The notes beneath the pieces are model-generated. The model was not told the DNA's origin and searched no databases. It saw only the letters and a list, made by a program, of their open reading frames with translations. From the NCBI RefSeq assembly GCF_001194135.2, contig NC_068981.1, positions 7,616,531 to 7,652,800 of the forward strand: a DNA stretch of 36,270 nucleotides, in the 5' to 3' direction. The translations under genes were made by a program, and so were the position numbers. The stretch is from Octopus bimaculoides. Taxonomy: Eukaryota. Shown here one piece after another: positions 184 to 36,222 of this stretch (positions are counted from its first letter, which is position 1; each line of letters starts with the position of its first letter).

Positions 184-750
184 TCATTGGAACGCCCCTG
201 CAACTAATTCATATTCTTCTAGAATGGAGCCGACCGTCTCCATTTCGGAGACTCCTGATACCATGACGCTGACGTCGTCCGTGTAGGCAGACACTACTCT
301 TCCGCGTCCCAGTTCGAAAGGGATGGCCCTCAATTGGTCCAACTTCCACAGCAGTGGCTCGAGAGCCAGCACGTACAGAAGAGATGACTGCATGCAGCCC
401 AGACGGACCGAGCATGCGATGCTAAACGGATCCGATAGAAGGTCATTTACTTTGTCCACCGAGCAGGTGCCGATGTGTATTGCAACGATACAGGCTCTGG
501 AAACGGGTCCGAAACCGATCGCTTTAAGGACGGCTTTCAGGAAGCGGTGGTCGACTCTATTGAGTACCTTTGATTGATCCAAACTGATCAGGGCCCCACC
601 GAAGCCAGCTTTAGTCAGTGCCCTCTCTAGGATGCATTGCATAAGGTGGAGGTTGACGTGGACAGACCTGTTAGGGATTGCGCCCGTTGGTGCTTCCTCA
701 ACGACTAGCACCAACCTTGTCGCTAATACCTTGGCCAAAATCTTAAGCTG
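184..750 (-). mobile_element. L1/Tx1-clade non-LTR retrotransposon, decayed reverse transcriptase fragment
   Basis: ORF 184..939 contains LKILAKVLATRL, ISLDQSKVLNRVDH, SVRLGCMQSSLLYVLALEPLL and SAYTDD. These are degenerate forms of the L1/Tx1 RT motifs LDQEKAFDRVDH, SVRQGCPLSPLLY and YADD. The ORF N-terminus is only trinucleotide repeat. Confidence 0.85.
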
Positions 751-905
751 TGTTGTTGTTGTTGTTGTTTCAGTTGTTTGTGGTGGTGGTGGTGGTGGCG
801 TCGGCGGCGACTGAAGCGATGGTGGTGGTGCTGCCGCAGTTCGCATTGCTGCTGCTGCTGCTGCAGTCGTCGTCGTCGTCGTCGTCGTCGTCATCATTAT
901 CGTTG
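751..905. repeat. Compound trinucleotide microsatellite (TGT)n-(TGG)n-(GCT)n-(GTC)n
   Basis: Read directly from the sequence. Confidence 0.95.
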
Positions 906-987
906 CTGCTGGTACTTTGGCACGTGGTACTGATGTCATAGCAACAAGAGGAGATTATATTTTTCTTTGGCCAGGAATTTATTTCAC

Positions 988-1537: not shown

Positions 1538-4445
1538 ACAAGACAGGGTACGAAAAATCAGCTACTGGTTCAAATCTTCCCGAAATACAGGAGCTGGAAG
1601 TGCCCCACAACCGGGATATTCCAACAGTTGGCCATAACGCACATCATCAAATAACCAAAAGAAAAAGAACAAAAAAGTTCATTCGGCTTTCTATCATGCC
1701 ATTGAGTTCCCCACAAATAAATCTAATACTAAACGAACCTACTTAAACAGGAGACTGAAACACCTTGAAGTAAGACCCTACATAGACAGTAACAAACTTG
1801 CCAATGTCAGAAGAAACATTATGAAAAAGAAATTACTGAATTAGAGATTGACCAAATTAAACAAGCAGTAAGGGATAAAAAGAATGAAACTGCAGCTAAA
1901 GAAGATACTACAGAGGAAATAATTATAGAACAGCCCAAGTCTGATGAAAATACAGTAATGATTGAAAGAGTTAAGGTAACTGATAGGCAAAGTGAAATAC
2001 TCTCTGAACCAACCATAAACACTAAGGCAGATTGAAATCAAATAGATGAAGAAAGTCACACAGAAATTAACCCAACAGAACTAGATGATCTAAAATATCA
2101 AATCATGATTGAATGACTGAAAATTAAAGAAACCAGTATGAATGAACGCTACACTCTCCCCAAAATTCGCAATTCTAACCAAAACCTGAAAATAATTGGT
2201 AAAATCCGCCTTGCACTTAAGGATATAATTTCAGCTAATGATGTTGATATTACAGATCTCAACCACCTGTACTATGCATCTGCGATGATCTCAACGATGC
2301 TATGTGGTGAAAGGATTAGAAATCGACATGTCCACAAAATGCCTGCTTAGCAAGAGCGTATTCAGCACCAAATTCAGTTACTTAGGCCTGACATAGAATA
2401 TTTGAAAAACCTTAAGTTTGACAAGACTATCAAACCCGAAAATTAATGAAGGAATATAATATGAAAACCATATTTGACATCAATACCACCATAGAGATCA
2501 TCAAGAAAAAGGTGTGTGCTAAAGCTGCCCGCATAGCATGGTATGAAAAGTGCGTTAGATTCTTCAAGGACAACAACATGTTAAAAAATAACCCAAAACA
2601 TTTTTACAGAAAGATAGGAAAAATACCAGTTACAGTAAAGTTTATTCCATCAAAAGAAGAAGTACAGGAATTTGGGAATAAAATTTGGGCAGAAGAAAAA
2701 ACACACAGTGAAAAGGCCTCTTGGATTAATTGAATATCTACTGATTTAGACTCCTTAGAAGAGCAAAAGTGAGAGGGTATCAAGGTAGAGGATGTAAAAT
2801 CTGCTCTCAGGAGGTCAAGCAAATGGAAGTCTCCAGGAAAGGATAAAATTCCTAACTTCTGGTAGAATGTCTTCTCAGAGAGCCATGAACTGCTAACAAA
2901 ACCTTACAACAATGTTTTGCAACAACCTAGTTAATGGTGTCACGTTCCTACTTCCCAAAAATGAAGAAACAAATGAACCAAAAAATGATCGACCCATAAC
3001 CTGCTTAACAACAATGTATAAAATGCTAACATCTGTCTTGACTGAATATGCCTATAGATTTTTAATAGAAATTAGCATATTCCCTAATGAGCAAAAAGGA
3101 TGTAAACGTGGGTCCTATGGTTGTAATGATCAGCTACTCATCAATAAGAGGATCTTGGAAGATTTTCAGAAACGATGCAAAAACTTGTCGATAGCCTGGG
3201 TAGACTATAAAAAACTTTTGATAGTCCAACACATTGCTGGATTAAGAAATGTCTGGAAATGTATAAAATAGCACCTTCTCTTCAAAACTTCTTGTATGTA
3301 AATATGAGAACATGGAGAACCACACTGACTCTCTTAATGCTGGAGATGTAAGAATTTCATGTGGCATTATCCAGGGTGACTCTCTATCACCACTCCTCTT
3401 TTGTTTATCCTTAATACCTCTCTCGAAATTGCTCGATGATGTACAATACCGCTATAACATGTTTGATAAAAATATAAATCATCTCATTTACATGGATGAT
3501 TTAAAGCTATTTGCAAAAAATGACCAACAACTCAAGGGTTTACTAGCGATTGTTAAACAATTCAGTGATGACATCAGTGATAACGATTGTTAAACAAGTC
3601 AGGAGAAATGTGCAAAAGCTACCTTTATCAAAGGAAAAATGACAGAAACATCCAATGTTAATCCTGACCAGCAGAATGTCATAAAGGAATTGGAACCAGC
3701 GGTATTTGAAGGGGACGGAATCAAACATTCAGTGATGAGAGTAAGGATCAGAAGAGAATGTTATCGCAGAGTGAGAGCAATACTCAAGACAGAGCTGAAT
3801 GCAAGAAACAGGATCGAAGCGATCAATACTTTAGCCATACAAGTCGTGACTTACAGTTTCAATATAGTTAACTGGTCAATTACTGAAATATGTCATCTTG
3901 ACAGAAAAATATGAAAATTGTTGACAATGCATAGAAGGCAGATATAGAACAACTTTATTTGCCAAGAAAAGAGGGAGGCCGTGGACATTTACAACTGGAA
4001 TTAACAATGAAGATTGTCACAATTGGCCTAGACACCTACCTGAAATACTCTGATGGCTGAATGTTAAGACTTGTCCCAAAATATGAAAACAAGTAAATTT
4101 CATACTCACTAACAAAACAGGCAAAGGAATATCTAAGTGAATTTCAAATACAAATTCCAGAATTAGACGTACTAGAAACAGGTACAAAACAAAGTTAAGC
4201 GTATGAAAACCTGTGCTAAAGCTGCTGCCTTACATATTCTTACTGATAAATGGCAAGAAAACCTCTCAATGGCAAATATCCAAAGAGAGCTAATATTGCC
4301 GATGTTGACAAAACATTTACCCATCAATGGTTAGTGGCTTCTGGCTTAAAATCAGAAACAGAAGGGTTTATCATAGCAGCCCAAGATCAATGCTTACCTA
4401 CAAGAAACTACCAGGCCAACATATTTAAAGACCGGCAGCTTCCCA
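1538..4445 (+). mobile_element. R4/Dong-clade non-LTR retrotransposon, degraded, 5' region present and 3' end missing
   Basis: ORF pieces include IDSNKLANVRRNI (N-terminal domain), NDRPITCLTTMYK, KGCKRGSYGCNDQLLINK, AWVDYKK, GIIQGDSLSPLLFCLSLIPLS, YMDDLKLFAK and LKSETEGFIIAAQDQCLPTRNY. Many stops and frameshifts. Homology stops before the CCHC finger. Confidence 0.9.
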
Positions 4446-4492
4446 ACATGCAGTCAGATTTTGTCTATGATGTCACGTTCTTTTCTCTACAG

Positions 4493-4529
4493 CCTACTCT
4501 CTGAATATGCACAATTGTATTGTTTGCCC
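4493..4529 (+). CDS. Candidate 37-nt micro-exon
   Basis: GTTCTTTTCTCTACAG acceptor and CCC|GTAAGA donor. Two frames are open (LLSEYAQLYCLP or YSLNMHNCIVCP). No partner exon established. Confidence 0.3.
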
Positions 4530-4890: not shown

Positions 4891-5032
4891 TCTTTCCATT
4901 TCTGTACCGAATCATGTTTCTGCTTCTGAAAAAGCGGCATCAGAAATTAGCACCAAAATGAACGCCAAAATGCAATACTTTCCAGTGTGCACTGAGCGGC
5001 AGCAGAAACATGTTGGTACAGAAATGGAAAGA
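4891..5032. repeat. Inverted repeat, about 33-bp arms with a 76-nt spacer
   Basis: The left arm TCTTTCCATTTCTGTACC-GAAT-CATGTTTCTGCT (4891-4924) matches the reverse complement of 5001-5032 (TCTTTCCATTTCTGTACC-AA-CATGTTTCTGCT). Confidence 0.9.
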
Positions 5033-5614
5033 ATAAAGCTGGATATAGAAATCTCTGTTCTCCTTAGTGATCAATTTATACATACATACATACATAATAC
5101 ATACATACATACATACATACATNNNNNNNNNNNNNNNNNNNNNNNNNNNNNNNNNNNNNNNNNNNNNNNNNNNNNNNNNNNNNNNNNNNNNNNNNNNNNN
5201 NNNNNNNNNNNNNNNNNNNNNNTGTGTGTGTGTGTGCGTGTACCACATCCATATATGTACGTGTGTATGTGTGTATCGACGATATTGTTCTAAGATATTT
5301 CTAGTTTACATTGCGAGCCCAGACTTGGGCACCAGTTATCAAAACGTGATTTTTTTTTTTTTAAACGTGTAAAAATCTCTCACCTTTGTTTTCTTCTTAA
5401 CATCGATTGAAAATATGATAAATATTCGCTAGATTAGTCACATTAGATTATTTTAGTAGAAAATTTCCAATAGAGTTCAATATATGATTTTGGATATTTT
5501 GCTTCCAGTGCTTGATAAACGTGTATTGCTTAGAAAATAATAGAAGCACAAGTCTCAATGTAATCCGTTTAATCGAGCTCTGGATAATTTGGGAGAACAA
5601 TTTATTACAAATAT

Positions 5615-6547
5615 CTAATCACAAAACAATACATTATAGATAATTAAACCCAGGACCAATATTTCTATGAAACAAAACAAAACCCATTTGATTATCTTTT
5701 GGGAGAAACTAGAATCGTTTTTGGTGAGCAGAGAAGACGTACTACGTTTTCTTAGATGGCACTGACATACAGTTTCCGATTTGGAATTGTGTTGTAAATC
5801 CCAGTTTGAACAAGAAAAATGTCGTAAATTTCGTAAAGAATATATATAGGCTCGACGTAAAGATTTAGAGTTACCGGATGACAGTACCGATTCTTTACTA
5901 CTGCAACAAATGTTATAGCCGTAGTTCTTTAGAAGAATTTCTAAATTTCTTCCAGTAGGATAAATGCAAATGTAGAACCTACTTCTATTTGAACGTATTA
6001 CATCGTCATATCCAGAGAAATGAAATGACGGCGAAATGATTTGACGGAATGATTGTTCAGCTTTATTGCCACGGTTAGCATATTGGTAATTCTTTGATTC
6101 CACATTCCATGTTGCCATTGCAGGTTTGCATGAATATTGCTTTGCCTCTAGATTTTCACCAACGCTGCAGTTTGCCAGTATCTTTCGACTGATATCACTA
6201 GAATGTCCCAAAGCATTACTTCCACGTTCCTGCACCGAATTACTTTGATCGTCATTCTTGAATAATTTTAAAAGACTGCGTGCTGAAGAATTAACAGATG
6301 AACAATGTCTTTTGATGAAAGCCAAAATCTGATTGATATCTGTTGTATTCAGTGCAAGTGATTTCTTGGAAATACTTGACTTTTCCTGGTGTTCATGAGA
6401 AATTGCACTAAGCTTATATTTTGAAGGGAAAAAGATTTCTGCTTCGCAGTCATCTAACAAGGGCTGTAAAAGGAAACACGTTAGAATTATGGCTAGTTTC
6501 ATTTTCTTGTCATCCTTAATTGCGGCCAAGAAGATCGATCTCATCAT
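5615..6547 (-). CDS. Uncharacterised 310-aa Cys-rich glycoprotein with signal peptide and C-terminal membrane anchor
   Basis: 933-nt stop-free ORF in non-repetitive AT-rich DNA. Signal-peptide-like MKLAIILTCFLLQPLLDDCEA from the ATG at 6502. Five N-X-S/T sequons, nine ectodomain Cys, an RKR site, and hydrophobic IIKWVLFCFIEILVLGLIIYNVLFC. AATAAA (minus, 5601-5606) lies just after the stop. Possible TTTTAG acceptor just upstream of the first ATG. Confidence 0.8.
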   Translation of the reverse strand: MMRSIFLAAIKDDKKMKLAIILTCFLLQPLLDDCEAEIFFPSKYKLSAISHEHQEKSSISKKSLALNTTDINQILAFIKRHCSSVNSSARSLLKLFKNDDQSNSVQERGSNALGHSSDISRKILANCSVGENLEAKQYSCKPAMATWNVESKNYQYANRGNKAEQSFRQIISPSFHFSGYDDVIRSNRSRFYICIYPTGRNLEILLKNYGYNICCSSKESVLSSGNSKSLRRAYIYSLRNLRHFSCSNWDLQHNSKSETVCQCHLRKRSTSSLLTKNDSSFSQKIIKWVLFCFIEILVLGLIIYNVLFCD

Positions 6548-7540
6548 AACTAAAATCTTATTTCAGCTAAGAGAAGACTGTATGAATTAATCCCTTTTAA
6601 ACAATTGACTGTCGTCTTCTAAAGTTTTCGTGTACTTCCTTAAATGACACCGTTTAATATTCAAAATTCCTTTTGAATTCTTCCGGTCCAATAAAACATT
6701 TGTGATATTTATCGGTTGTGAAGTCGAAAGTTCTTTAATGTTTGTAATAATCTTCAATTAAAGCAGCTTCCTCACAACCTATATAATACATTGAAACATT
6801 GCACTGTATTATGAAAGCTACGAAATGGAGATTTAAATCAGAAATCGCAAGACAGGAAACGCTTTGTACAGGACGCTAAGATATTATAAACTTTCCCTCG
6901 TTTTATTATTTTTTTTTTCATTAAGACCGAAACAAAGTAAAACATTTCAACACGTCATCATATTGACAAAAAAATTAGGTTTGTGGAGTTAAAACTTAAC
7001 AAACTAAGATCAATGCAGCTAAATTAGTTTTAGATTATTCAAATATATTTCGTTAAATATAAAATACTGTGCAATCTATATTTGCGTTTAAAAATATAAA
7101 TTGATTGGATTTAAAACAGGTATGATTAACAACTAAGGTTAAGTCTTAGACAATCCAATTCGTGGGAATTATCACTAATCTCTTTTATTGATCTTTGGGG
7201 GTTTTGTGCCGCAATAATTTCCACTTTATTTGCAGCTTGGTTGATGGGTGGTAAATGACTATACACAACATGTTTTAAAGCACTCCATTATGTGGATGTT
7301 TTGTATCTTAGAGTAACTATTAATAATGTATTAAGGTCTATTTATTTTGCTGCCAATTTCAGTAACTGGGATGGAGTAATAACGGTGACAGGGGACAAAC
7401 CAGCAACCATTACGATAATTTGCTTCTGTTACAACCACTCATAACTTTGCTGTCATCCTTCGATTTAGCCAACACTTCATTTCCTGGGACGAGTCACTGT
7501 TGACGGTGGTGTTGTTGCTATTATTTAGCAACAGGTATCA

Positions 7541-7696
7541 GGGCAGTGAACTGGCAGATTGAATAGCGCGCCGGGAAAAATGTTTAGCAGCATCTCGACC
7601 GTCGGTACCTTTTGAGTTCAAATTTCACCAGGGTCGCTGAAATAAGTACCAGTTGAACACTGGGGTCGATGTAATCGAATAATCCCCTCTCCCAAA
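7541..7696 (+). mobile_element. tRNA-derived SINE, family A, internally deleted copy
   Basis: GGCAGTGAACTGGCAG head, GAGTTCAAATT B-box-like motif, and AAATAAGTACCAG...CTGGGGTCGATGTAATCGA body shared with the copies at 10632-11062. Confidence 0.75.
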
Positions 7697-7742
7697 CTAA
7701 TCAGTACAAAGGATTATTTAGCACCAGATTAGCTACAGTCGA

Positions 7743-7812
7743 ATAGAGAAAAGGAGAGAGAGAGGGGGAGAGAGAGAGGGAGAGAGAGAGAGAGAGAGAG
7801 AGNNNNNNNNNN

Positions 7813-7853
<41 letters not shown>
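7743..7853. repeat. (GA)n microsatellite with a 10-N gap
   Basis: Read directly from the sequence. Confidence 0.95.
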
Positions 7854-7858
<5 letters not shown>

Positions 7859-8027
7859 TATAAAGATGTTCCAGTTGTGACCATCCTGGACTATCTTGTT
7901 CAACATATTCTTTCTGAGTTTAGATGTTGGGATATGACATGATGGAACTTGGCTGTTATTTCTAGCAAGTCAAGCCTCCAGGTAGAAGTGCTTCTATTGC
8001 GAGAAGGTGAGCAACCACAATAACAAC

Positions 8028-8115
8028 AAGGATTTCTGGTATGAGCACAAGTCTAGCAATTTTGAATGAGGTGGGGGGTGAGGTTCATCGTTGTCATCGA
8101 CCGCTGTACTTTCCG
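8028..8115 (-). mobile_element. Degraded 3' fragment of SINE family A
   Basis: GCACAAG...AATTTTG...CATCGACC resembles the reverse complement of the AAAATTTCAGGCCTTGTGC tail at 10770-10790. Confidence 0.4.
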
Positions 8116-8119
8116 TCTG

Positions 8120-9460
8120 TCATCAACAATTTCAATTTTGTCCACCACAGGACTTTCTTACCATGGCCGGCTGGCAGCTAAAATCTGTCTGCCCTTTCCA
8201 GCAAAAAAGAAGGCGCTGGGTAGAACTTCATAATGGACTCGCCCGATAGACAGATCCGCCCTTTGCAAGTCAGAAATATTCGGATGTTAGAAGAGTGAGT
8301 GCGGAACAGTTTCGTCTCACTGGGCGAATATCGAACATACCCGCTGATGGCACTTCAGTCTCTGCAGAGTTTATCTCGAACAGGCAATACACTTTGGTTG
8401 CACTCCCAGGCCAGGGTCCTCTGGAAATTATTAATGGGTTCTGGATGGAAAGTCTACAGAAAGAGACTACCCTATTGATTTTCGTTGATATCCAGTGTTC
8501 CTTCGTGAATGTCATCGCTTTTGTTTGTACCTGTAAAACCCCAGCATGAGACATCCACCAATCGCATAGGTCATGGAACAGAAGGCTGTGAGTACTTGAT
8601 GACACTTTTAGTGCCAGGCAAGCACTTTGCCTCGGTTTTTGTCTGACCAAGACTTGAAGTTATATGAAGGAAACAAGCTAGGATAAAACGCATCAGACAA
8701 ACGGCGACGAATCCAGTTCCCCGTCAAGAATTTCCTGGAGGTTTCGCAGCCTCAGTGTATGGCCGCGGGTCATCATCCACAGCACGCCTAGATCTTCATG
8801 TAGAGGATGTTGAGAGCCTCACCAGTGTCCCTACCATAAAATGAGGAAGAGCACAGGCATCAGTCTAGCGAAATGTGAACTAGGACTAGGTACGATTATC
8901 AAGTGGTAATTGATAATGAAGGTGATGTAGGATCGCCACCACAGCCCGAGCATTCAGGATTTGCTTCGTTTGAGCCCCATTTCTGAGTGACATTAACTAC
9001 TCGACTTATCCCCATGCAAATCTTCTCCAACTGGGCTTCTGGACCAAAGCAGACCCTTAGCAATTTAACCGATCCATCCAGCTCCTCACAAGGCTATCTA
9101 GCCGCAAGCCCATCGAGATCTTTTTTTAAATTTTGGTTCCCATCAGCGACACGCAGTTTCTCAGGGCGGTACAGATCCCTTTCGGTGTTCTTGCTGTCCG
9201 ACGCTTTTACAGTAACATTATTGGAAATACGGATACAGCTATTTTGCATCCAAGTTTTCACAACAGTATATCAAGAGTTAGTAAATACAGAGGAGACGAG
9301 AGGAGACAATCCTGGCAAACTGAACGATTAATACTGAATGGCTCCTATCGGTGACCATTCACCTTAATCTCCCGTCAGATGTCGTTGTACTTTACGGCGA
9401 TCCATCCACTAATGACGGGATCAGTTGAGAAAATTTCGCCCGATCTTCATTCTAATGCTT
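8120..9460 (-). mobile_element. L1/Tx1-clade ORF2 fragment (RT second half to C-terminal domain), heavily decayed
   Basis: Manual minus-strand translation across frameshifts gives PVISGWIAVKYNDI*REIKVNGHR*EPFSINRSV, MGTKI*KKISMGLRL, DGSVKLLRVCFGPEAQLEK, LAWECNQSVLPVRDKLCRD, GRICLSGESIMK and KKVLWWTKLK. Confidence 0.75.
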
Positions 9461-9685
9461 TTAACAGATGTCTCCACAGTAATTCGAAAACTGTTGCCAT
9501 TCTTTTCAAAGTACAAATATCATTTTTCTCTTTGTTTTGGATTACGCCCTGGGGTAAAGCAATCCCTGTTTTTACACAATTCTCCCTGTTAATTGTTTCG
9601 TTATAGAAACATTTTCTGAGTCTGAAAATTTTGTCTGTGTGGTGTGACGATGGAAGTAATATGCATTGTAGAACATATATGTGTT

Positions 9686-9759
9686 TTTGTTGTTGTTGTT
9701 GTTGTTGTTACTGTTACCATTCAGAAGAATTAGGTAAAACTCAAAGAAAACACACACGC

Positions 9760-9799
<40 letters not shown>

Positions 9800-9847
9800 C
9801 AGGGGCATGTTGTCTTATGCTGATACAATGAGAAACANNNNNNNNNN

Positions 9848-9890
<43 letters not shown>

Positions 9891-9939
9891 AACACACAGT
9901 TCAGGGGCATGTTGTCTTATGCTGATACAATGAGAAACA
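9686..9939. repeat. (TGT)n and (CA)n tracts with a 43-nt unique segment duplicated across a 10-N gap (probable assembly duplication)
   Basis: CAGTTCAGGGGCATGTTGTCTTATGCTGATACAATGAGAAACA occurs at 9795-9837 and again at 9897-9939, on either side of the gap. Confidence 0.85.
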
Positions 9940-10631
9940 AACCTAAATGAAAAATACAAGATCCATCCCGGTCTGATTTTAATCATTTGAATGTCAATCG
10001 CCAGACAAATACGTTTGTGTTGCGTTGTTACATTTTCGGCGAACTTGCCAACCTCTCACGCTGGCCAACATAAGAACTTTAACAGTAAGGCACTATACAA
10101 AATACATGGTCTAACATTGAAGTCTGGTTCTTATTTTTAAAAATCCCACATTTTTGTCATGTCACTATTTCGTAAAGAAAATCCTAAGTCTAAAATAATC
10201 CTCCTTAATCGCTCGCATTAAGATGGCATTACATATCTAATACAGCGTTTAAAACATTTCAGCGTAAACTAATATAACATTGACTTCTTAGAGATTTACA
10301 AGTCCGACATATTAAACGAGTCAATAAGTTCCATTGCGAAAGAGTAACGACTAACGTTTCAAACAATGTTTTTCCTAATCTTTAATCTTCTCAGCTAAAA
10401 AAGAAGTCAAATGTATAAACATCAAACATACGGTTTTCTGAACAAAATCCATCCATGGCCAATTGTGTTTCTAAACCAATATAGGAAGCTAATACTTCTT
10501 TTTTGTTTTAATTACTAAAAACCGTGTCCACAGTTTTAGTTTCACCGGAACGGTAGGTTTTTTTTTTGTTTTTTAATCTAATCTACGGTTATGTTGTTCT
10601 TAAATAGCCAGATATTGGCTGTGGACGAATA

Positions 10632-10806
10632 AACTAGGGGCAAAATGCTTAGCGGCATTTCATCCGTTTTTACGTTCTGAGTTCAAACGCCGCCGAATTC
10701 GACTTTGCCTTTCATCGATAAAACAAGTACCAGTTATGGGGCTTTTCTAATCTTGCAATCCACTCCCTCAAAATTTCAGGCCTTGTGCCTGTATTCGAAA
10801 AGATAC
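10632..10806 (+). mobile_element. tRNA-derived SINE family A, copy with degraded head
   Basis: AAAATGCTTAGCGGCATTTC...GAGTTCAAA...GACTTTGCCTTTCATC...AAGTACCAG...AAAATTTCAGGCCTTGTGCC. Confidence 0.8.
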
Positions 10807-10847
10807 TGTGCCTAGTGTAAAAAAGGATATTAATGTGCACGATAATA

Positions 10848-11062
10848 GGGTGAGCTTGCAAAATCATTACTGCGTCAGACAAAATGTTTAGCGGCATTTC
10901 GTCCGTTTTTATGTTCTGGGTACAAATTCCGCTGAGGTTGACTTTGCCTTTAATTCTTTCGGGGTCGATAAAATAAGAATCAGATAAGCACTAGGGTTGA
11001 TGTAATCTACCAATTCCCATCCGTCTCAAATTTTAGGCCATGTGCTTCTATTAGAAAACATA
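10848..11062 (+). mobile_element. tRNA-derived SINE family A, near full length
   Basis: Colinear with the preceding copy: AAAATGTTTAGCGGCATTTCGTCCG...GACTTTGCCTTT...TTTCGGGGTCGATAAAATAAG...AAATTTTAGGCCATGTGC. Confidence 0.85.
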
Positions 11063-11212
11063 TTAATGTGTACAGGAAGCAGAGTCATATTTTAAATCGA
11101 TTCTGTTTAATAAAATTCAGTGAAGATAATCTGTACCTATAAAATCAGTTTAAGTCACTTAAGACGAGAGTGCAGTGAAGAGTGAATGGGATATTCTTCA
11201 GTGTAAAGACAA

Positions 11213-11256
11213 CATTGAACATGTTTCGCCCCTGTAAGAGTTCATCAGTAAAACAG
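11213..11256 (-). ncRNA. Hammerhead-ribozyme-like motif, intact core with decayed stems
   Basis: Minus strand reads CUGAUGA-ACUCUUACAGGGGC-GAAA-CAUGUU-CAA, with a palindromic helix III (ACAUGU) and a GUU triplet. The first base pairs of stem I and stem II are mismatched. Confidence 0.5.
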
Positions 11257-11508
11257 ACTCGTCTCTACTGTTCGATCACAGAATGGAAAGATAAAATGTG
11301 TAGGAGTTTAGTGAAAGAACCTACGGTGAGTGATAACTTAACAGATATCTACATGTATCATTTGTAAATTTAGATTTCACAGCAGTCTATCGGTGCAGAC
11401 GTAACAAATATGTTGGCCTCTAGCATAACAGGCTGCGAAAATGAGATTTAGCGTAACTTCCTGGTTTTGTATACAAACCAAATTCTCTTATCTATTGACT
11501 TATTTTAT

Positions 11509-11663
11509 CTTCTTCTTCTTCTTCTTCTTCTTCTTCTTCTTCTTCTTCTTCTTGTTCTTCTTGTTCTTCTTCTTCTTTTTCTTCTTCTTCTTCTTCTTCT
11601 TCTTCTTCTTCTTCTTCTTCTTCTTCTTCTTCTTCTTCTTCTTCTTCTTCTTCTTCTTCTTCT
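11509..11663. repeat. (CTT)n microsatellite
   Basis: Read directly from the sequence. Confidence 0.97.
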
Positions 11664-11867
11664 TGTAGATAATCTAGCAAAAGATCTTCGTACAAACCAG
11701 AGATTGCTAACAAGCTGTGTGTTTACGCTATCATCTTGTCGCTGTGTTTATAAGTTTATAAGCCTGCAGATTATAAACCGGAAACAAAATAAAGAAAGAA
11801 ATTTAAAACAACAACAACTGAACGAGAAATCTTTGCTGTGAATCAGAATCAGAGAGTCAAAGAAGAA

Positions 11868-12278
11868 ATTATGATTATTTCTTTTTATGCTAGATTTTGT
11901 TGGAACTCCTCGAGTGTCGCATGTGTAGCGGGCTTGCTGCCGCAGCCTACCGTACCATGCTATTTGTTCTTTACAACTTTCCTAATTATTCTGGCCGTGC
12001 CAAGGAGGCAAAACTTTTGTAGCAGTTCTACCGGGCACTCTATTCCGATTTCTTTTATATTCCTCTTGATGCTTCCTGATTCTGTCTCCAAGAACCCAAC
12101 AGTAATTGGCACAATCTTTATCCTCCTTATTTTCTATAGACGGGCTCTTTCGTACATTTACTTTTTGTGTTTCTTCTCGACTATTTGTGGGTCAAAGGAG
12201 CACGTAACATCAACTATATAGTATATATCTGGTGCACTTTGTCCACCACCGCTAGGTCCCGTCTGTTATGTTCTACCC
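11868..12278 (-). mobile_element. R4/Dong-type LINE 3' end (REL domain), subfamily A
   Basis: Minus translation gives HNRRDLAVVDK, DVTCSFDPQIVEKK, IVPITVGFL and ELLQKFCLLGTARIIRKV, then a 3' UTR ending AAATAATCATAAT. Confidence 0.8.
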
Positions 12279-12590
12279 TTATTATTATTATTATTATTAT
12301 TATTATTTTATTGCCTTTGCACAGCTTCTAACGCTGGAGATGTAGTACGGTGTCAGCTTTTCACTATCAGTGAACTAAGGTAGCATCCATTATTTGTCGA
12401 GCACCCTCCGGAGTATCCGAACGGTTCCAAGCAGTGCTGTTTTCTGCAAGTGCTCCACCCTTATTGCAGCCCCTATTTGTTCCATGTACTTCTCAACATT
12501 TTTACTCACTGTTCCCAGGGCTCCGACAATTATTGGTACTACTACCAACTTTTTCAGCGACCACAACAGTTTAACCTTCTAAGCAAACCT
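12279..12590 (-). mobile_element. R4/Dong-type LINE 3' end, subfamily B, with (TAA)n tail (12279-12307)
   Basis: LWSLKKLVVVPIIVGALGTVSKNVEKYMEQIGAAIRVEHLQKTALLGTVRILRRVLDK*, then a short UTR and a (TAA) tract. Confidence 0.88.
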
Positions 12591-12599
12591 GTCATATTT

Positions 12600-13770
12600 A
12601 TTGATTTTTCTATTCAATAGCCTTATTTATATTCGTGCTTTCACTTCACTACCGAGTGCAGTTCTGTATGCCTTGTGTATGTGCTGTACTTTGTGGTGGT
12701 GCTCTTATTTTCATTGTATTCAATGTGTTTTGTGTAAGATGAGTGCGGTGCCTAGTTGTGCTATTTTTTGTATGTTATCTATACATGTAAGCCCTGGAGT
12801 TTTTATTATATATTTATCTGAATGTTTTGTGTCATACCTAATGCGCCCACTATGATAGGAATTGTTCCTGTTTTTAGACTCCACATTCGAGTTACCTCTA
12901 TTTCCAGATCTTTGTAATTTGAAAGTTTCTCCATTTCTTTTAAAGAAATATTGTCATCTGTTGGTAGTGATATATCGATTAGAAAGCATTTTTTTTCCTT
13001 CATGATCTTTGACAACTCTATCCGGCCTATTGGCTTTAATTTTTTTATATGTATTGGCATATCCCAGAGTATGGTTGCTTTCTCATTTTCAGTAAGCTTT
13101 TCTGAGGAGCGCCTATACCATCATTTTTCTGTTCTTATTCTATAGTGTTGGCATAAACTCCAGTGTATGTAGGTCCCAACTCTGTCGTATCTGTGAATAT
13201 ATTCCTTCTTAGCCAGGACTGGGCAGCCAGAGACAATATGATTTACTGTTTCTTCATCACCACATATTCCGCATTTACGTGTCTTTCTTTTCATTAACTG
13301 GTTTTGGTAATTTCTGGTGGGAAAGCTTTGATCTTGTGCTGCAATTAAAAATCTTATTTCATTTGCTGTATCAAGTGTGATGTTGCTACTCTTAACTAGT
13401 TTTCCTCTTTTCAAAGTTGCTTTGGCACATTTTTCTAAGCTAAGTTTCATGTTTATTTTTTTGGTAAATCCATGTACTGTCTGTAGTAATGTTTCCAGCT
13501 GTTTGTCGTTTGTATCATATAGTTTTAGATCATTTGTATATAAAGGGTAGCTGATTATTTTGCCGTAACAGTTGTATCCTCATCCAGTTCTATTTAGCAT
13601 GTCAGATAAATGTGCTAGTTTCAAGCAGAAAAGGAGTGGAGAGACCGTGTCTCCTTGGAATATTCCTCTTCTAATGGGGATGGCTTTGGTTTTTATGAGT
13701 CCCTATTTTGTCTGGAGCTGTAGCACTATTTGCCATTTATTCCTGGAATGTTTTATATCTTTTATATATT
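12600..13770 (-). mobile_element. R4/Dong-type LINE, subfamily C (RT remnant, CCHC finger, REL), internally deleted
   Basis: RRGIFQGDTVSPLLFCL, YTNDLKLY, FLIAAQDQSFPTRNY, CGICGDEETVNHIVSGC (CCHC), NRPDRVVKD..KCFLIDIS (PD..D REL core), IPIIVGALG and QKIAQLGTALIL. Confidence 0.9.
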
Positions 13771-13989
13771 CTATGACCGTCCCTGCACCATTTGTTATCA
13801 CCAGGCAAACCGACACTACCACTGACAGCATCACCACCAACCATATGACCAGAGACGAAATCCACGGTGATAACACCCGCGGAGACGGCAGACGTACCAA
13901 CACCGCTGGATCATTGCGCCATAACGACAGCATCAACACCGGTGATACCAACAACATCCTCACGCCCGGAGCCCACCAGAGATACACCA

Positions 13990-14570
13990 GGAGTGCGAAT
14001 ATAGCCACCTCCCAAGCTTGTAAATATATCGGATCGGCCAGTACATCTTTCAAGTGAGACTTCCACAACCATCAGTCATCCTTCAGAGACCCAGAAAGAC
14101 GTTTTGTCACGTCCCTGACCAGCCATGCGTGGCACCTCAAAGATCAAGGGACCCTATATGATATCAGATGGGAGATAATAGAACATCCAGGCCCATATAT
14201 TAATGGGAGTGGCATCGTAGAGAGAACCAAAATTCTTAAGAACTATGCTAAGCCTAGCACGTTAAATAATCGTAAAGGAATGTCCTCAAATGTGTTAATT
14301 TGAAGAGCTACCGACTGGAAAACTATATCTCCCTGTTTGCTGGTTAGGTTACTACGAGACTGTAAAGCTTTTGATTATAGCTTCTTTTATCCTCTGGTCC
14401 AGGGGATATAACCCGCCCTCAATAATGTTTTATAGGTGAGCCGTTGGACCTCGTTAACGTAGCATTTCCTCACGTCCTCGAGGTAGAAAGTTAAATTTGT
14501 CTTTGTACAGAGTCGGATGAGCTGTCAACAAGGCTTTAGCTTTCGTCGATACGAAACCATTGGTGCCTTT
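13990..14570 (+). mobile_element. Penelope-like element, GIY-YIG endonuclease region plus 3' region
   Basis: KYIGSASTSFK*DFHNHQSSFRDPERRFVTSLTSHAWHLKDQGTLYDIRWEIIEHPGPYINGSG matches the PLE GIY-YIG C-terminal pattern. A hammerhead-like relic lies at 14514-14565. Confidence 0.75.
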
Positions 14571-14639
14571 ATGACTAAAATGTAACTATTTTAAAAAAAA
14601 TATATATATATGAAATTAAAAATATTGGATTTCTAAATC

Positions 14640-14845
14640 TCTCAGAGAGACTTACACAATAGCAGCACGATAAAGTGATGGTTTGTTGCCAACTTAATGT
14701 GGCAGTCCCAGGAAGGGAAAAATGCTGCTGCTACTTAGCCCCAGGAAACACTGTTTCCAGTTGGCCATGTGACTCAAGCGTACTGTGTCCTTATGTTTTC
14801 AAACAGGGGAGATAAGATATTGGTGCACTGTTGTACCACTATCTT
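14640..14845. mobile_element. Unclassified interspersed repeat
   Basis: Recognised only from recall of octopus-type repeats (CTCAGAGAG...ACACAATAGCAGCACGATAAA...). No second copy in the window. Confidence 0.3.
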
Positions 14846-14846
14846 T

Positions 14847-14880
<34 letters not shown>

Positions 14881-15071
14881 NNNNNNNNNNNNNNNNNNNN
14901 NNNNNNNNNNNNNNNNNNNNNNNNNNNNNNNNNNNNNNNNNNNNNNNNNNNNNNNNNNNNNNNNNNNNNNNNNNNNNNNNNNNNNNNNNNNNNNNNNNNN
15001 NNNNNNNNNNNNNNNNNNNNNNNNNNNNNNNNNNNNNNNNNNNNNNNNNNNNNNNNNNNNNNNNNNNNNNN

Positions 15072-15119
15072 GGAAAACGATCGTACTGCATTACCTCTGG
15101 ATATCCTTGTTGCTTATTT

Positions 15120-15150
<31 letters not shown>

Positions 15151-15680
15151 CTCCCAAGTCCGGCACGTGCTTCCTAAAGCACACCGGCCCATCCATGAGA
15201 AAAGCTCTGTCCAAGAACAACACCTCTCACTACTCTGAGGAGTGCACACTGTCGAACTGCCCCACCAATGATGCTGAATTGTGCCAGAATACCTATGTTA
15301 TATATGAGATCATCTGTGGCGCATCCTATATCGGAAGCACGACAAGAAAACTGCATTTACGCATTAAGGAACACATGCAGTTAGATACTTCCGTGAAGAA
15401 ACATCTACGGAAATGCCTGACCCGGGAATTCACAGTGCACATCAAGGCAACATAGTGGAACAGAGGAAACCTCAGAATTTCTGAGGTTATCCTCATACAC
15501 TAAAAAAAGAACCAAAATCAATAATAGAAGGGAGTTACAGAAAGCTAGCTGGTTGCTATAGCAACACCCTTCTGCGCATATCCAATCCACACACGCTCAC
15601 ACACACGTACATCGGCAACATTCGTCAATTTCTTGAAAATGGGGTCATAAACCTGAAATATTGAATACAAGGTAAGTCTA
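15072..15680 (+). mobile_element. Penelope-like element 3' fragment with GIY-YIG endonuclease, interrupted by (AT)n at 15122-15150
   Basis: ORF 15195..15455 gives CTLSNCP...VIYEIICGASYIGSTTRKLHLRIKEH, the classic VY-x-I-x-C...YIG-x-T-x-R-x-L-x-x-R-x-x-EH motif. A hammerhead-like relic lies at 15630-15665. Confidence 0.85.
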
Positions 15681-15769
15681 CATTAATTCACATATTTATT
15701 TTCTTGTGATTTACCTTTCATTTACTTCGCATTGTTTTGGCCTTCCGCACGATCTTTTATACAATATAC

Positions 15770-15980
<211 letters not shown>

Positions 15981-16132
15981 TGTCAGTCGAGTTCCAGATT
16001 ATCCTTGCAGTTTCGGCTGGTTATAATCGATAGTGGTACAACAATGCACCAACATCTTATACTTTAACCTGATGGTGCTTTGATTTACTGGGAAGCAATA
16101 CTACTGTATTGCACAATTTAATAATTCTTTTC

Positions 16133-16171
<39 letters not shown>

Positions 16172-16529
16172 GTAAGATTCGGTTGAATTAGGGACTTAAA
16201 TTGAGGCACCTCGTTAGTTCGGAATAATAAACACACACAACGATATTATGTAAATATCAAAACTCGGTACATAAGTACCGGTCGAAGGATATTCCTGCAG
16301 AATATGGAGACAATTAGACCCAGCTGAGTGAAGAAATCCGCTCTTGAGCTTTTCAGATATGCACATTATATTAAAATATACGGTTCACAATATATACGAA
16401 GGGCAGATTCCGAGACAGGTGAATAAAATATGAATGATGTGTGTGTATGTGAGTGCTTACGTGTGTGTGTATGTATTTCCGTGTCTTTTTAAAATCATCT
16501 TGATTATCTCTGTAAAATAGCTGCCATTA

Positions 16530-16588
16530 TCATTATCACCACCACCACCACCACCACCAATACTACAGCTGTCACTATCGCTGCTGCT

Positions 16589-16621
<33 letters not shown>

Positions 16622-16632
16622 TCTGCTGCCGC
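16530..16632. repeat. Compound (CAC)n-(GCT)n-(GGC)10 trinucleotide tract
   Basis: Read directly; pure (GGC)10 at 16591-16620. Confidence 0.95.
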
Positions 16633-18084
16633 CACAGTGAACACTTTCGCTGTTTGAACGTCGTCATCATTTCCACCTGAAGAAAATTACGTTTGTCTAT
16701 ATTATTTTTCCTAAAATAATTAATTTTCATTCTTTTTCAATTTTACTTTTATTTCATTTCATTCCAATTTCAATAAAATATCCGATTCATTAATTAGTTA
16801 ATTATTTTTTTCCTTCATTTCGGTTTTGGAATTCTATGCTTTTGTTTGTTTTGTGTGTCCTTGAGCGACGGGAATTAACCCCGGTTCACACATTTTGCAT
16901 CTGTGCCGTTTAAGTATCGATGGATGATAGATATTTGCGGAAGATTATGAGTGTGTGCGTACAGAGAGAGAGAGACACACACAGAGTATATGTATATGTG
17001 TATAAATATACATTGACACATACACACACACACATACATACACACTTCAGAAATGAAACCGCCCGTGGACTGTTAGCGATTTATCCTCATTTTCCCTTCT
17101 TTCTCCTTGGACTTTCCTGTTTCAAACCAAGAGCTAGAAACGATAAGAACAACTCTCTTCTTTCACCGAAACGTTAAATTAATATATTGCTTGTGCACGT
17201 CCTCACGTTCGTTTTTTTTTCTTCATTTTTTTTGTTTCTGTTTTTCAATTGTNNNNNNNNNNNNNNNNNNNNNNNNNNNNNNNNNNNNNNNNNNNNNNNN
17301 NNNNNNNNNNNNNNNNNNNNNNNNNNNNNNNNNNNNNNNNNNNNNNNNNNNNNNNNNNNNNNNNNNNNNNNNNNNNNNNNNNNNNNNNNNNNNNNNNNNN
17401 NNNNNNNNNNNNNNNNNNNNNNNNNNNNNNNNNNNNNNNNNNNNNNNNNNNNNNNNNNNNNNNNNNNNNNNNNNNNNNNNNNNNNNNNNNNNNNNNNNNN
17501 NNNNNNNNNNNNNNNNNNNNNNNNNNNNNNNNNNNNNNNNNNNTATATATATATATATATATATATATCCACCACTTCTTGAGTGTGACATTGTCGCGGC
17601 GAAGAGGATTGCATGTTTCGTAGATCCGAAGAGTCTATAAGGTGAGCCGCGGCGGGTAGGCTCATTGCCAAGATGGAAGCCCCAGCTACAGTCAATGGAG
17701 GGCAAACAACCTGACAACTTGTCCAGAAGAACCCTCGACCTGTTACGACACCGACCAAAAGAAACCAAATTGCTCCCCCCACCACACCGTCCCAAAAGAC
17801 CCCTAAATGCCCCTGACATTTTGATGGATGCAGAAGGACTGGCATAGCACCTCCGGTGATGGGGGCTACTGGTGGACCTGATCTGGGATAACTTCAGCTC
17901 CATCAACCAAGCGTGTAAAAGAGAGTACACACACACACACACACTCACACACACGCACACACACACACAGATATGTATGCTCCTATGTATAATGTTTATT
18001 ACATTAAACGTTGCCAGTCTGCTCTTGCCTGGGCTATTCACGATTGTCGTGAACAGGCCAACCAATGGAAAAACTCTGACAGCC

Positions 18085-34670: not shown

Positions 34671-36222
34671 TCTCTAATAGTAAATGTGTATTTATCTTAC
34701 TGTGTGTGTAAATGTTTGTGTGCACACGTATATATTTCAGTATGTCTATATACCGCACACAAAGAAAATTTTGCGTATATGCACTCACACATACATATGC
34801 ATATGTGTTTGTCTGTGTTTGCATGTATACATGTATGCATGTATATGTAATATATATGTAGGTATATATATATATATATATATATATNNNNNNNNNNNNN
34901 NNNNNNNNNNNNNNNNNNNNNNNNNNNNNNNNNNNNNNNNNNNNNNNNNNNNNNNNNNNNNNNNNNNNNNNNNNNNNNNNNNNNNNNNNNNNNNNNNNNN
35001 NNNNNNNNNNNNNNNNNNNNNNNNNNNNNNNNNNNNNNNNNNNNNNNNNNNNNNNNNNNNNNNNNNNNNNNNNNNNNNNNNNNNNNNNNNNNNNNNNNNN
35101 NNNNNNNNNNNNNNNNNNNNNNNNNNNNNNNNNNNNNNNNNNNNNNNNNNNNNNNNNNNNNNNNNNNNNNNNNNNNNNNNNNNNNNNNNNNNNNNNNNNN
35201 NNNNNNNNNNNNNNNNNNNNNNNNNNNNNNNNNNNNNNNNNNNNNNNNNNNNNNNNNNNNNNNNNNNNNNNNNNNNNNNNNNNNNNNNNNNNNNNNNNNN
35301 NNNNNNNNNNNNNNNNNNNNNNNNNNNNNNNNNNNNNNNNNNNNNNNNNNNNNNNNNNNNNNNNNNNNNNNNNNNNNNNNNNNNNNNNNNNNNNNNNNNN
35401 NNNNNNNNNNNNNNNNNNNNNNNNNNNNNNNNNNNNNNNNNNNNNNNNNNNNNNNNNNNNNNNNNNNNNNNNNNNNNNNNNNNNNNNNNNNNNNNNNNNN
35501 NNNNNNNNNNNNNNNNNNNNNNNNNNNNNNNNNNNNNNNNNNNNNNNNNNNNNNNNNNNNNNNNNNNNNNNNNNNATATATATATATATATAATGGCACA
35601 CTCGTCAGAAACGATATAATCCACAAGGTATTGAATTATCCTCATAGCCATGTCAATACGCTCGTAATGTTAGTAATAGCGATCATTTCAATGCCGGAAT
35701 TAAGTTGATGCTAAAATATGTTAGAGTCATAAAGTGCCACCTACGAAAGTGAGATCTGACAGGAACCAAGATGGATTAAATGTGTGTGTCTCGTATTTGG
35801 CCTCCATTTTCAATTCCAGCATTCAGGAAAAATAAGTCAATGCAATAAAACTTGAAAAATATCAAATACGTTTTATTTCATATATCACTGGATGTTCAAT
35901 AAATACATTATACTCGGTATAGTTTTTCTATATCGCTATCAATTTTTTTGTTGGTTATGGCGATCATGAGAAGACATGGCCACCCATTTTCAGCGAGAGC
36001 ATTGTATAACATCGATGGGTACTTCGGTTAAGTTAGAAAGCTGGAAATTCCGCTAAACGTTTTGTAGAGACACTTCTAAGTGAAGTCGAAACCAAACGAT
36101 GCTTTATGGAGCAGCGATTTAAGGCGGGAAGAAAAGGCTTGAATGGTTGCATCATTCTTGTAGACAGCATCGATTTGGGTAAAAAATGATTTGTAAATAT
36201 ATTTATAAACTTTATATATAAA

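Follow-up and report, generated by a model that had tools for sequence, protein, structure and literature searches.

The DNA analysed here is a stretch of 36,270 nucleotides from Octopus bimaculoides (contig NC_068981.1, positions 7,616,531 to 7,652,800), referred to below as the window. On its minus strand, at 5615..6547, the ORF listing gives an open reading frame (ORF) of 310 codons plus TAG, and the locus raises the question of whether this frame is a gene and, if so, to which family its product belongs. The initial annotation, made from the letters alone, took it for an orphan surface glycoprotein lying in a transposon-dominated interval. The comparisons described below make it probable that the ORF, a complete single-exon coding sequence (CDS), is a genuine octopod gene for a membrane-tethered protein, and that it is a highly diverged paralogue of the CRISP-like branch of the CAP (SCP/PR-1) family.

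The reading frame and its relatives

In Octopus vulgaris the orthologous frame lies at 9956-10888 of a locus (L003, OX597814.1) that is colinear with positions 5261-16983 of the window at 83-87% identity. The same 310 codons are intact there, and the CDS is annotated as a single exon whose product (P0002, 295 amino acids, 85% identity) is named 'Hypothetical predicted protein [Octopus vulgaris]' by one source. Runs SRR11869385 and SRR11869394 supplied two short Logan contigs with the orthologue of a third octopod (P0003, 67% amino acid identity); the frame is intact at 492-1424 of contig L001. These contigs (L001 and L002) were not used as evidence of expression; they look genomic, being colinear with the flanks and ending in microsatellite. 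A look-up of the exact window protein, in its 310 and 295 amino acid forms, in assemblies and Logan contigs returned no record, an absence that is uninformative.

At the nucleotide level the CDS is 92.6% identical to that of O. vulgaris and 81.8% identical to that of the third octopod, with flanks at 92.1-92.7% and 80.5-83.1%, respectively. The flanks carry 11 insertion or deletion (indel) events relative to O. vulgaris and 12 relative to the third octopod, and the CDS carries none in either comparison. At the flank rate, 7.5 and 12.7 indels would be expected in 933 nt, and the Poisson probability of observing none is 5.6e-4 for O. vulgaris and 2.9e-6 for the third octopod. In neutral simulations with the observed number of substitutions and the flank spectrum, the frame stayed open in 3.3% (O. 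vulgaris) and 0.05% (third octopod) of cases. Since equally diverged flanks carry indels while the CDS has neither indels nor stops, selection is keeping the frame open. Judged by these comparisons, the ORF is a genuine, lineage-restricted protein-coding gene of octopods, and more than a product of chance. The earlier proposal of a real single-exon gene was thus borne out, as was its lineage specificity, the gene having been found so far in octopods alone.

The family was traced by several routes. An exhaustive phmmer search (1.84 billion representatives) found one relative besides the orthologues, P0004 (E 1.5e-29), which has six PF00188 domains, all six of them aligning with residues 41-215 of the ORF at 26% identity. 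This E-value is a sum over six similar, weak and non-independent domain matches, and independent tests were added. Alignment of the three orthologues with the six CAP domains of P0004 by hhalign gave a probability of 96.1% (E 3e-9, 163 columns). A profile of the orthologues, searched against PDB sequences, had only two matches, the snake-venom CRISPs triflin (E 0.002) and stecrisp; the window protein itself gave weak matches in a PDB sequence search, the CAP protein SmVAL4 among them. On a custom CAP hidden Markov model (HMM), built from 120 ordinary CAP proteins none of which belongs to the lineage of the window gene, the window protein scored 42.5 bits and the O. vulgaris protein 39.8, the best of 2000 shuffles reaching 7.7. 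The orthologue profile found only the orthologues among 5.8 billion proteins, in a search whose word seeding is too insensitive at such divergence. A Pfam match of one of the three orthologues to DUF7045 (17.9 bits, cut-off 27; E 0.0033) was put down to chance.

When the orthologue profile was compared with the same 120 CAP proteins, the best matches were octopod proteins, namely P0019 of Argonauta hians (50 bits), P0009 and P0011 (42.8 bits), the last being named 'cysteine-rich venom protein pseudecin [Octopus bimaculoides]' by one source and located on CM046601.1 at 7.55 Mb. BLASTP against octopod CRISP-like proteins aligned residues 55-297 of the window protein (24% identity, E 2e-12), and the tail was alignable too. 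The CDSs of P0011, P0019 and P0009 all consist of a single exon, as does the window gene, and their products are of similar length (288-307 vs 295-310 amino acids). The parts also follow in the same order: a signal peptide, an N-terminal Cys followed by P-x-[KN]-[FY], the CAP domain, a C-terminal region and a tail starting N/K-W-V-L-(L/F)-C. Unlike these proteins, the window protein has a six-residue insertion between the N-terminal Cys and P-x-[KN]-[FY]. The octopod CRISP-like proteins pass the Pfam CAP model at 74-82 bits and carry CAP1, CAP3 and CAP4, whereas the window protein stays below the cut-off and lacks CAP1-3. Taken at the level of sequence, the core is a degenerate CAP domain whose homology to bona fide CAP domains is statistically supported, and scores, exon number and tail would place the gene in the octopod single-exon clade of P0011, P0019 and P0009. 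The view of the protein as an orphan, of no family or of an undescribed one, did not survive the essentially full-length match (residues 55-297) to the CAP/CRISP-like P0011 and P0019.

Several observations weigh against this assignment. The gathering cut-off of Pfam CAP (PF00188) is 21.1 bits, and the window protein stays short of it with 16.3 bits (E 0.019, residues 101-196); a weak match appears in two of the three orthologues, and the third-octopod orthologue scores just 7.0 bits on the custom HMM. CAP1, CAP2 and CAP3 are absent from all three orthologues, and only CAP4 (GENL, residues 130-133) is present, in two of them. The definitions of CAP3 (HNxxR) and CAP4 (G[EQ]N[ILV]) were taken from PMC4118828; the PROSITE patterns for CAP1 and CAP2 matched 95 and 61, respectively, of 121 family members in a sanity check. 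The full-length AlphaFold2 model, from an 8-sequence alignment, was uninformative, with a predicted local distance difference test (pLDDT) score of 31.8 and only the C-terminal helix 280-308 above 50. A model of residues 37-216 from a 100-sequence alignment reached a pLDDT of 66 and a predicted template modelling score (pTM) of 0.59, with the helix-strand order typical of CAP. The top 23 Foldseek matches of this model in the PDB were all CAP proteins, including pseudecin, triflin, GLIPR1, PR-1, Ves v 5, GAPR-1, SmVAL4 and Pry1 (template modelling score, TM, 0.47-0.63), a fold match that is not independent evidence, the alignment consisting to 97% of ordinary CAP proteins. The model suggests compatibility with the CAP alpha-beta-alpha sandwich and is not proof of it.

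A precedent for a motif-poor CAP fold is SmVAL4 of Schistosoma mansoni (PDB 4p27), which has a bona fide CAP fold with only CAP4 and one residue of the cavity tetrad of two His and two Glu (PMC4118828). The CAP motifs are signatures rather than requirements, SmVAL4 being a structural member without three of them. SmVAL4 was the structural match of rank 19 to the model of residues 37-216. It is no closer to the window protein than other CAP proteins are, and is a soluble, secreted, sterol-binding flatworm protein without a membrane anchor.

Sequence features and the predicted C-terminal anchor

An in-frame stop lies five codons 5' of the first ATG of the ORF. The first 15 residues (6503..6547; minus strand, as for all parts of the gene) form an optional N-terminal extension upstream of Met16, its 15 codons forming part of the open frame in each of the three species. 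Met16 is the start in the O. vulgaris annotation and in the gene calls on the Logan contigs, and its context is A-rich (AAGAAAATGA). A signal peptide is predicted at residues 16-36 (6440..6502), with the hydrophobic core LAIILTCFLLQPLL, and it aligns with the paralogue signal peptides. By the -3/-1 rule, applied by eye, cleavage probably occurs after A36 (C-E-A/E), and C34, the counterpart of the first mature cysteine of the paralogues, would then be removed.

The degenerate CAP domain spans residues 41-204 (5936..6427) according to hhalign, phmmer, the custom profile and the PDB profile search. Its best-kept part is a cavity block at residues 115-131 (6155..6205) with H115, R121 and the start of CAP4 (G130-E131-N132-L133), columns that are at least 80% conserved in the family; NALGHSSDISRKIL is invariant across the three orthologues. 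Script checks placed sequons at N67, N86, N126, N187 and N277, N187-R-S (5981..5989) being the sole one common to all three orthologues, and cysteines at 24, 34, 82, 127, 140, 194, 214, 215, 246, 261, 263, 292 and 309. Nine of the cysteines belong to the ectodomain, where 214-215 form CC and 261-263 form CxC; conserved in the orthologues are only C34, C82, C127, C194, C214, C215 and C261, together with C292 and C309 of the tail. Residues 205-283 (5699..5935), a vestigial cysteine-rich C-terminal domain, align with the Cys-rich region of P0011, P0019 and P0009, and R266-K267-R268 (5744..5752) is a juxtamembrane polybasic motif and possible proprotein-convertase site.

A hexamer resembling a polyadenylation signal, AATAAA (5601..5606, minus strand), begins 9 nt and ends 14 nt past the stop and is invariant in the three species. 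The sequons, nine ectodomain cysteines, CC, CxC, RKR, hydrophobic C-terminus and AATAAA had all been listed in the initial annotation, and all were reproduced by script. Further downstream, about 240 nt past the stop (~5375-5385, minus strand), AAAGGTGAGAG resembles a 5' splice donor and lies in a block invariant across the three species; AAAGGTGAGAG may mark an intron in the 3' untranslated region or belong to another transcript.

Strongly hydrophobic 19-residue windows occur in the ORF only at starts 281-292, reaching the last-but-one residue, with a Kyte-Doolittle maximum of 2.63. The predicted hydrophobic anchor runs from W288 to C309 (5621..5686), includes the conserved E295, C292 and C309, and is followed by D310 only. 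What had been proposed, a surface glycoprotein that is membrane-tethered or anchored by glycosylphosphatidylinositol (GPI), is supported by the predicted signal peptide, the sequons and a hydrophobic C-terminus that lacks a cytoplasmic tail. Homology links this tail (FSQKIIKW...VLFCD) to those of P0011, P0019 and P0009, which are shorter by the 6 residues that it has gained, and its hydrophobicity of 2.63 compares with values from below 1.6 to 2.2 in the paralogue tails. No other part of the protein is as conserved as this tail, E295, C292 and C309 being invariant. Strict conservation together with high hydrophobicity fits a transmembrane helix better than a GPI signal, and a retained transmembrane helix is a reasonably likely identity for this segment.

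The same gene, in the same family, could instead end in a GPI-attachment signal that is removed in the endoplasmic reticulum (ER), leaving the mature protein GPI-anchored, as reported for some mammalian GLIPR1L1 orthologues. Such a signal would suit the lack of a cytoplasmic tail, with D310 alone after the hydrophobic run, and the succession seen by eye in all three species of small residues at 277-280 (N-D-S-S, N-S-S-G and G-H-S-D), a polar spacer of 7-8 residues and a hydrophobic run. The related molluscan CAP proteins P0010, P0007, P0019 and P0004 end in short, classical-looking GPI signals, and GPI-linked CAP proteins are documented (PMC6824042). However, the last 17 residues are identical in the three species and the ratio of non-synonymous to synonymous substitution rates (dN/dS; method of Nei and Gojobori, with 500 bootstraps) is 0-0.11 in the tail, at a dS of 0.42-0.54 against the third octopod; such conservation is unexpected for a discarded signal that needs hydrophobicity alone. 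The tail is also 22 residues long, six of them gained, and far more hydrophobic than the paralogue tails. Efficient GPI addition favours marginal hydrophobicity of the signal. In addition, the conservation of E295, C292 and C309 points to a membrane helix that is kept and has a function. A GPI-anchored mature protein is therefore rather unlikely.

The vertebrate proteins GLIPR1 and GLIPR1L1 likewise hold a CAP domain at the membrane by a C-terminal hydrophobic element. GLIPR1 has a C-terminal transmembrane helix, and its structures (3q2u, 3q2r) are among the top structural matches to the model of residues 37-216 (TM 0.62). Unlike the window protein, GLIPR1 and GLIPR1L1 keep the CAP motifs and disulfides. 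GLIPR1L1 is a variably GPI-linked protein of the sperm surface, a binding partner rather than an enzyme and a membrane-raft partner of IZUMO1 (PMC6824042).

With regard to processing, the convertase consensus R-x-[KR]-R is not matched by the window sequence L-R-K-R-S, whereas RKRR of O. vulgaris and RRRR of the third octopod do match. Furin-type shedding is thus weaker for the window copy (RKRS, an incomplete consensus) than was first thought, the consensus being complete in both orthologues. Convertase release is plausible for the lineage and more doubtful for the window allele or species. The polybasic motif is absent at the aligned position of the paralogues, which read N-V-R-P-T, and it is new to the lineage of the window gene.

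Losses, constraint and competing accounts

The window protein keeps 16 of the 45 columns conserved at >=80% in 97 ordinary CAP proteins; the residues kept include H115, R121, G130-E131-N132-L133, W147, E150, Q169, G179, C194, Y196 and N201. Lost in all three orthologues are CAP3 (HNxxR replaced by I/S-K-x-x-C), the CAP1 region together with the second cavity His, the G-C-G turn and most core cysteines. Of the four aligned cavity-tetrad positions, three retain the family residue (H115, E131 and E150), and at the fourth, that of the second His, the orthologues have S, S or L; with this His lost, coordination of the Zn type by two histidines is unlikely. The paralogues have 21-22 cysteines and the window protein 13, of which only C34, C194, C214 and C261 are family-aligned, and in the Cys-rich C-terminal region only C214 and C261 coincide with P0011, P0019 and P0009. 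Since all but four of the paralogue cysteines have been lost, the cysteine-rich C-terminal domain is a vestige. Because the cysteine framework of both the CAP core and the C-terminal domain is gone, the window protein, as read from its alignments, is not to be filed as a CRISP in the strict sense. Loss of a cavity His and of the disulfide framework also makes an activity of the CRISP type, whether Zn-dependent or channel-blocking, unlikely.

Over the whole protein, dN/dS against the third octopod was 0.51-0.53 (bootstrap 95% upper bound 0.78), and none of the 500 bootstraps reached 1. The signal peptide and tail gave 0.11-0.12 in the same comparison, the vestigial Cys-rich region (residues 205-283) gave 0.55-0.88, and the CAP core of the three orthologues contains invariant blocks of 14-20 residues. 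A control was provided by the paralogue pair P0011 and P0009, with a dS of 0.375, a dN/dS of 0.28, 80% amino acid identity and 22 of 22 cysteines conserved, compared with 0.337, 0.53, 67% and variable cysteines for the window gene and its third-octopod orthologue. P0009 (run SRR11869390) is probably from the same species as contig L001, to judge by the adjacent run numbers and similar dS. At non-synonymous sites the window gene is about 1.7 times faster than this octopod CRISP-like pair.

The ectodomain behaves differently from the termini. Its dN/dS was 0.64-0.77 (0.64-0.65 against the third octopod), with bootstrap intervals touching 1 and 3% of the bootstraps reaching 1 against the third octopod. 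Nucleotide identity of the CDS is no higher than that of the flanks, and substitutions are spread almost evenly over codon positions. These figures, which speak against the reading of the ORF as a functional gene, imply that the ectodomain is only weakly constrained. The frame and the targeting and anchoring sequences are clearly under selection.

An unexpressed or functionless CRISP-like duplicate, a decaying relic still open by chance, would account for the flank-level identity, the nearly flat codon positions, the ectodomain intervals that touch 1 and the wholesale loss of signature motifs and cysteines. Under flank-like neutral change, however, a frame intact in three species has a joint probability of ~1e-5 (O. 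vulgaris) and ~1e-9 (third octopod). Against the third octopod the dN/dS of the whole protein falls significantly short of 1, the signal peptide and tail are under very strong constraint (0.11), invariant blocks persist in the CAP core, and the gene is annotated in O. vulgaris. A relic is therefore very improbable.

Least probable of all is the orphan first proposed, founding an undescribed lineage-specific family and possibly a retrocopy: in its favour, no Pfam match passes the threshold, the 5.8 billion proteins searched by single sequence and by profile yielded only the two orthologues, and one source names the orthologue 'Hypothetical predicted protein', but phmmer, hhalign, the PDB profile search, the custom CAP profile and full-length pairwise alignments all lead to CAP/CRISP-like proteins, and its 'no family' part is already refuted. 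Of the suggestion that the gene is a retroposed or intron-poor member of its family, the second half stood and retroposition was not needed. Because P0011 of Octopus and P0019 of Argonauta, the closest canonical paralogues, are single-exon too, the absence of introns is a family trait and not a sign of recent retroposition. A retrocopy origin was set aside on these grounds and for want of a poly(A) tract 3' of the gene.

Genomic surroundings and proposed role

The description of the interval as transposon-dominated held only in part, the 36 kb containing four fragments resembling reverse transcriptase (RT) or GIY-YIG, N gaps that total 3.6 kb, and perfect microsatellite over 2.5 kb. The gene had also been called the only long clean ORF in 36 kb. 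An RT-like ORF of 251-256 amino acids at 184-954 (minus strand) is likewise without N-runs; all other ORFs of at least 150 amino acids do cross N-runs or microsatellites. There are 12 N-runs with 3598 N (from 5123-5222 to 34888-35575), nearly all bordered by TA, CA or GA microsatellites, indicating assembly gaps at simple repeats, and they create most of the long 'ORFs' of the mechanical ORF list. An Rfam scan of the window found no RNA family.

The truncated RT fragment at 187-954 (minus strand) matches Pfam RVT_1 (39 bits, partial profile coverage) after a Thr/Ala/Pro low-complexity stretch, and a 75%-identical copy lies at 17026-17531 of the O. vulgaris locus L003. Beside it, at ~1045-1750, is a long homopolymer or low-complexity tract whose six frames read poly-S, -F, -K, -R, -L and -E. 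A degraded retroelement of the type without long terminal repeats (non-LTR) occupies ~2422-4504 (plus strand), its RT-like sequence being spread over three frames, which implies no fewer than three frameshifts and one or more in-frame stops. RVT_1 is matched by a piece of this element (38 bits), and the element's 3' part has 43% amino acid identity to a 400-residue O. vulgaris ORF (L003 19624-20826). A 5'-truncated fragment resembling the RT C-terminus and zf-RVT, at 12809-13579 (minus strand), has 68% amino acid identity to the same O. vulgaris ORF. The ORF at 15123-15452 (plus strand) has a weak GIY-YIG match (19.7 bits, cut-off 22.6) and may be the remnant of a Penelope-like element. An N-run and microsatellites occupy ~4940-5300, downstream of the gene at lower coordinates, and ~10 kb upstream of it are syntenic with O. 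vulgaris.

A tblastn search with CAP proteins against the window and the fetched O. vulgaris locus found no further CAP exons. The downstream neighbour in O. vulgaris, on the same strand (L003 13176 to the locus end), is an 829-residue model with two CAP and several EF-hand Pfam matches, an unusual pairing of domains; its CAP exons lie past the edge of the window and past the end of the fetched DNA. The neighbour may reflect local clustering of CAP genes, or the model may be a chimera. P0004, encoded on another O. vulgaris chromosome by a gene spanning 287 kb, is a giant multi-CAP surface or mucin-like protein of 1934 residues, with a signal peptide, six CAP and cysteine-rich repeats, Thr-rich linkers and a hydrophobic C-terminus.

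As the diverged CRISP-like paralogue favoured here, the gene would have kept the ancestral layout of signal peptide, CAP domain, C-terminal region and short hydrophobic tail. On this account CAP motifs 1-3 have disappeared, as have one cavity-tetrad residue out of four and, of the 21-22 paralogue cysteines, all except 4; the C-terminal segment has become longer, more hydrophobic and very conserved, and a polybasic motif has arisen ~20 residues before it. The protein would enter the ER, would be N-glycosylated at least at N187, and would be displayed at the cell surface or a luminal membrane with the degenerate CAP fold facing outward. Its C-terminal segment would serve as a tail-less type I anchor, in which the conserved mid-membrane Glu295 hints at an intramembrane partner, and release at the polybasic site may be possible in the species with the full convertase consensus. 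The degenerate CAP fold would present a fast-evolving, non-catalytic binding surface, and a quickly evolving binding or recognition role is the most economical reading, with GLIPR1L1 as partner of IZUMO1 in membrane rafts offering an analogue (PMC6824042).

It is conceivable, as a long shot, that an octopod-only CAP domain stripped of its disulfides and metal-binding His acts as a fast-evolving recognition module on a conserved transmembrane helix whose buried Glu pairs with a signalling or scaffolding partner. If true, the protein would represent receptor subunits of a new class at the cell surface, serving for instance in gamete, self/non-self or chemotactile recognition, and not a secreted CRISP.

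The window gene alone opens no long-standing question. What the assignment would do is remove a false 'orphan' and allow the 'Hypothetical predicted protein' of O. vulgaris to be named a divergent CAP-superfamily paralogue. The gene offers a small, clear example of a secreted cysteine-rich scaffold that loses signature motifs and disulfides, with strong constraint persisting on the sequences for targeting and anchoring. Such an example helps in annotating lineage-specific genes of cephalopods, and calibrates how far CAP domains drift.

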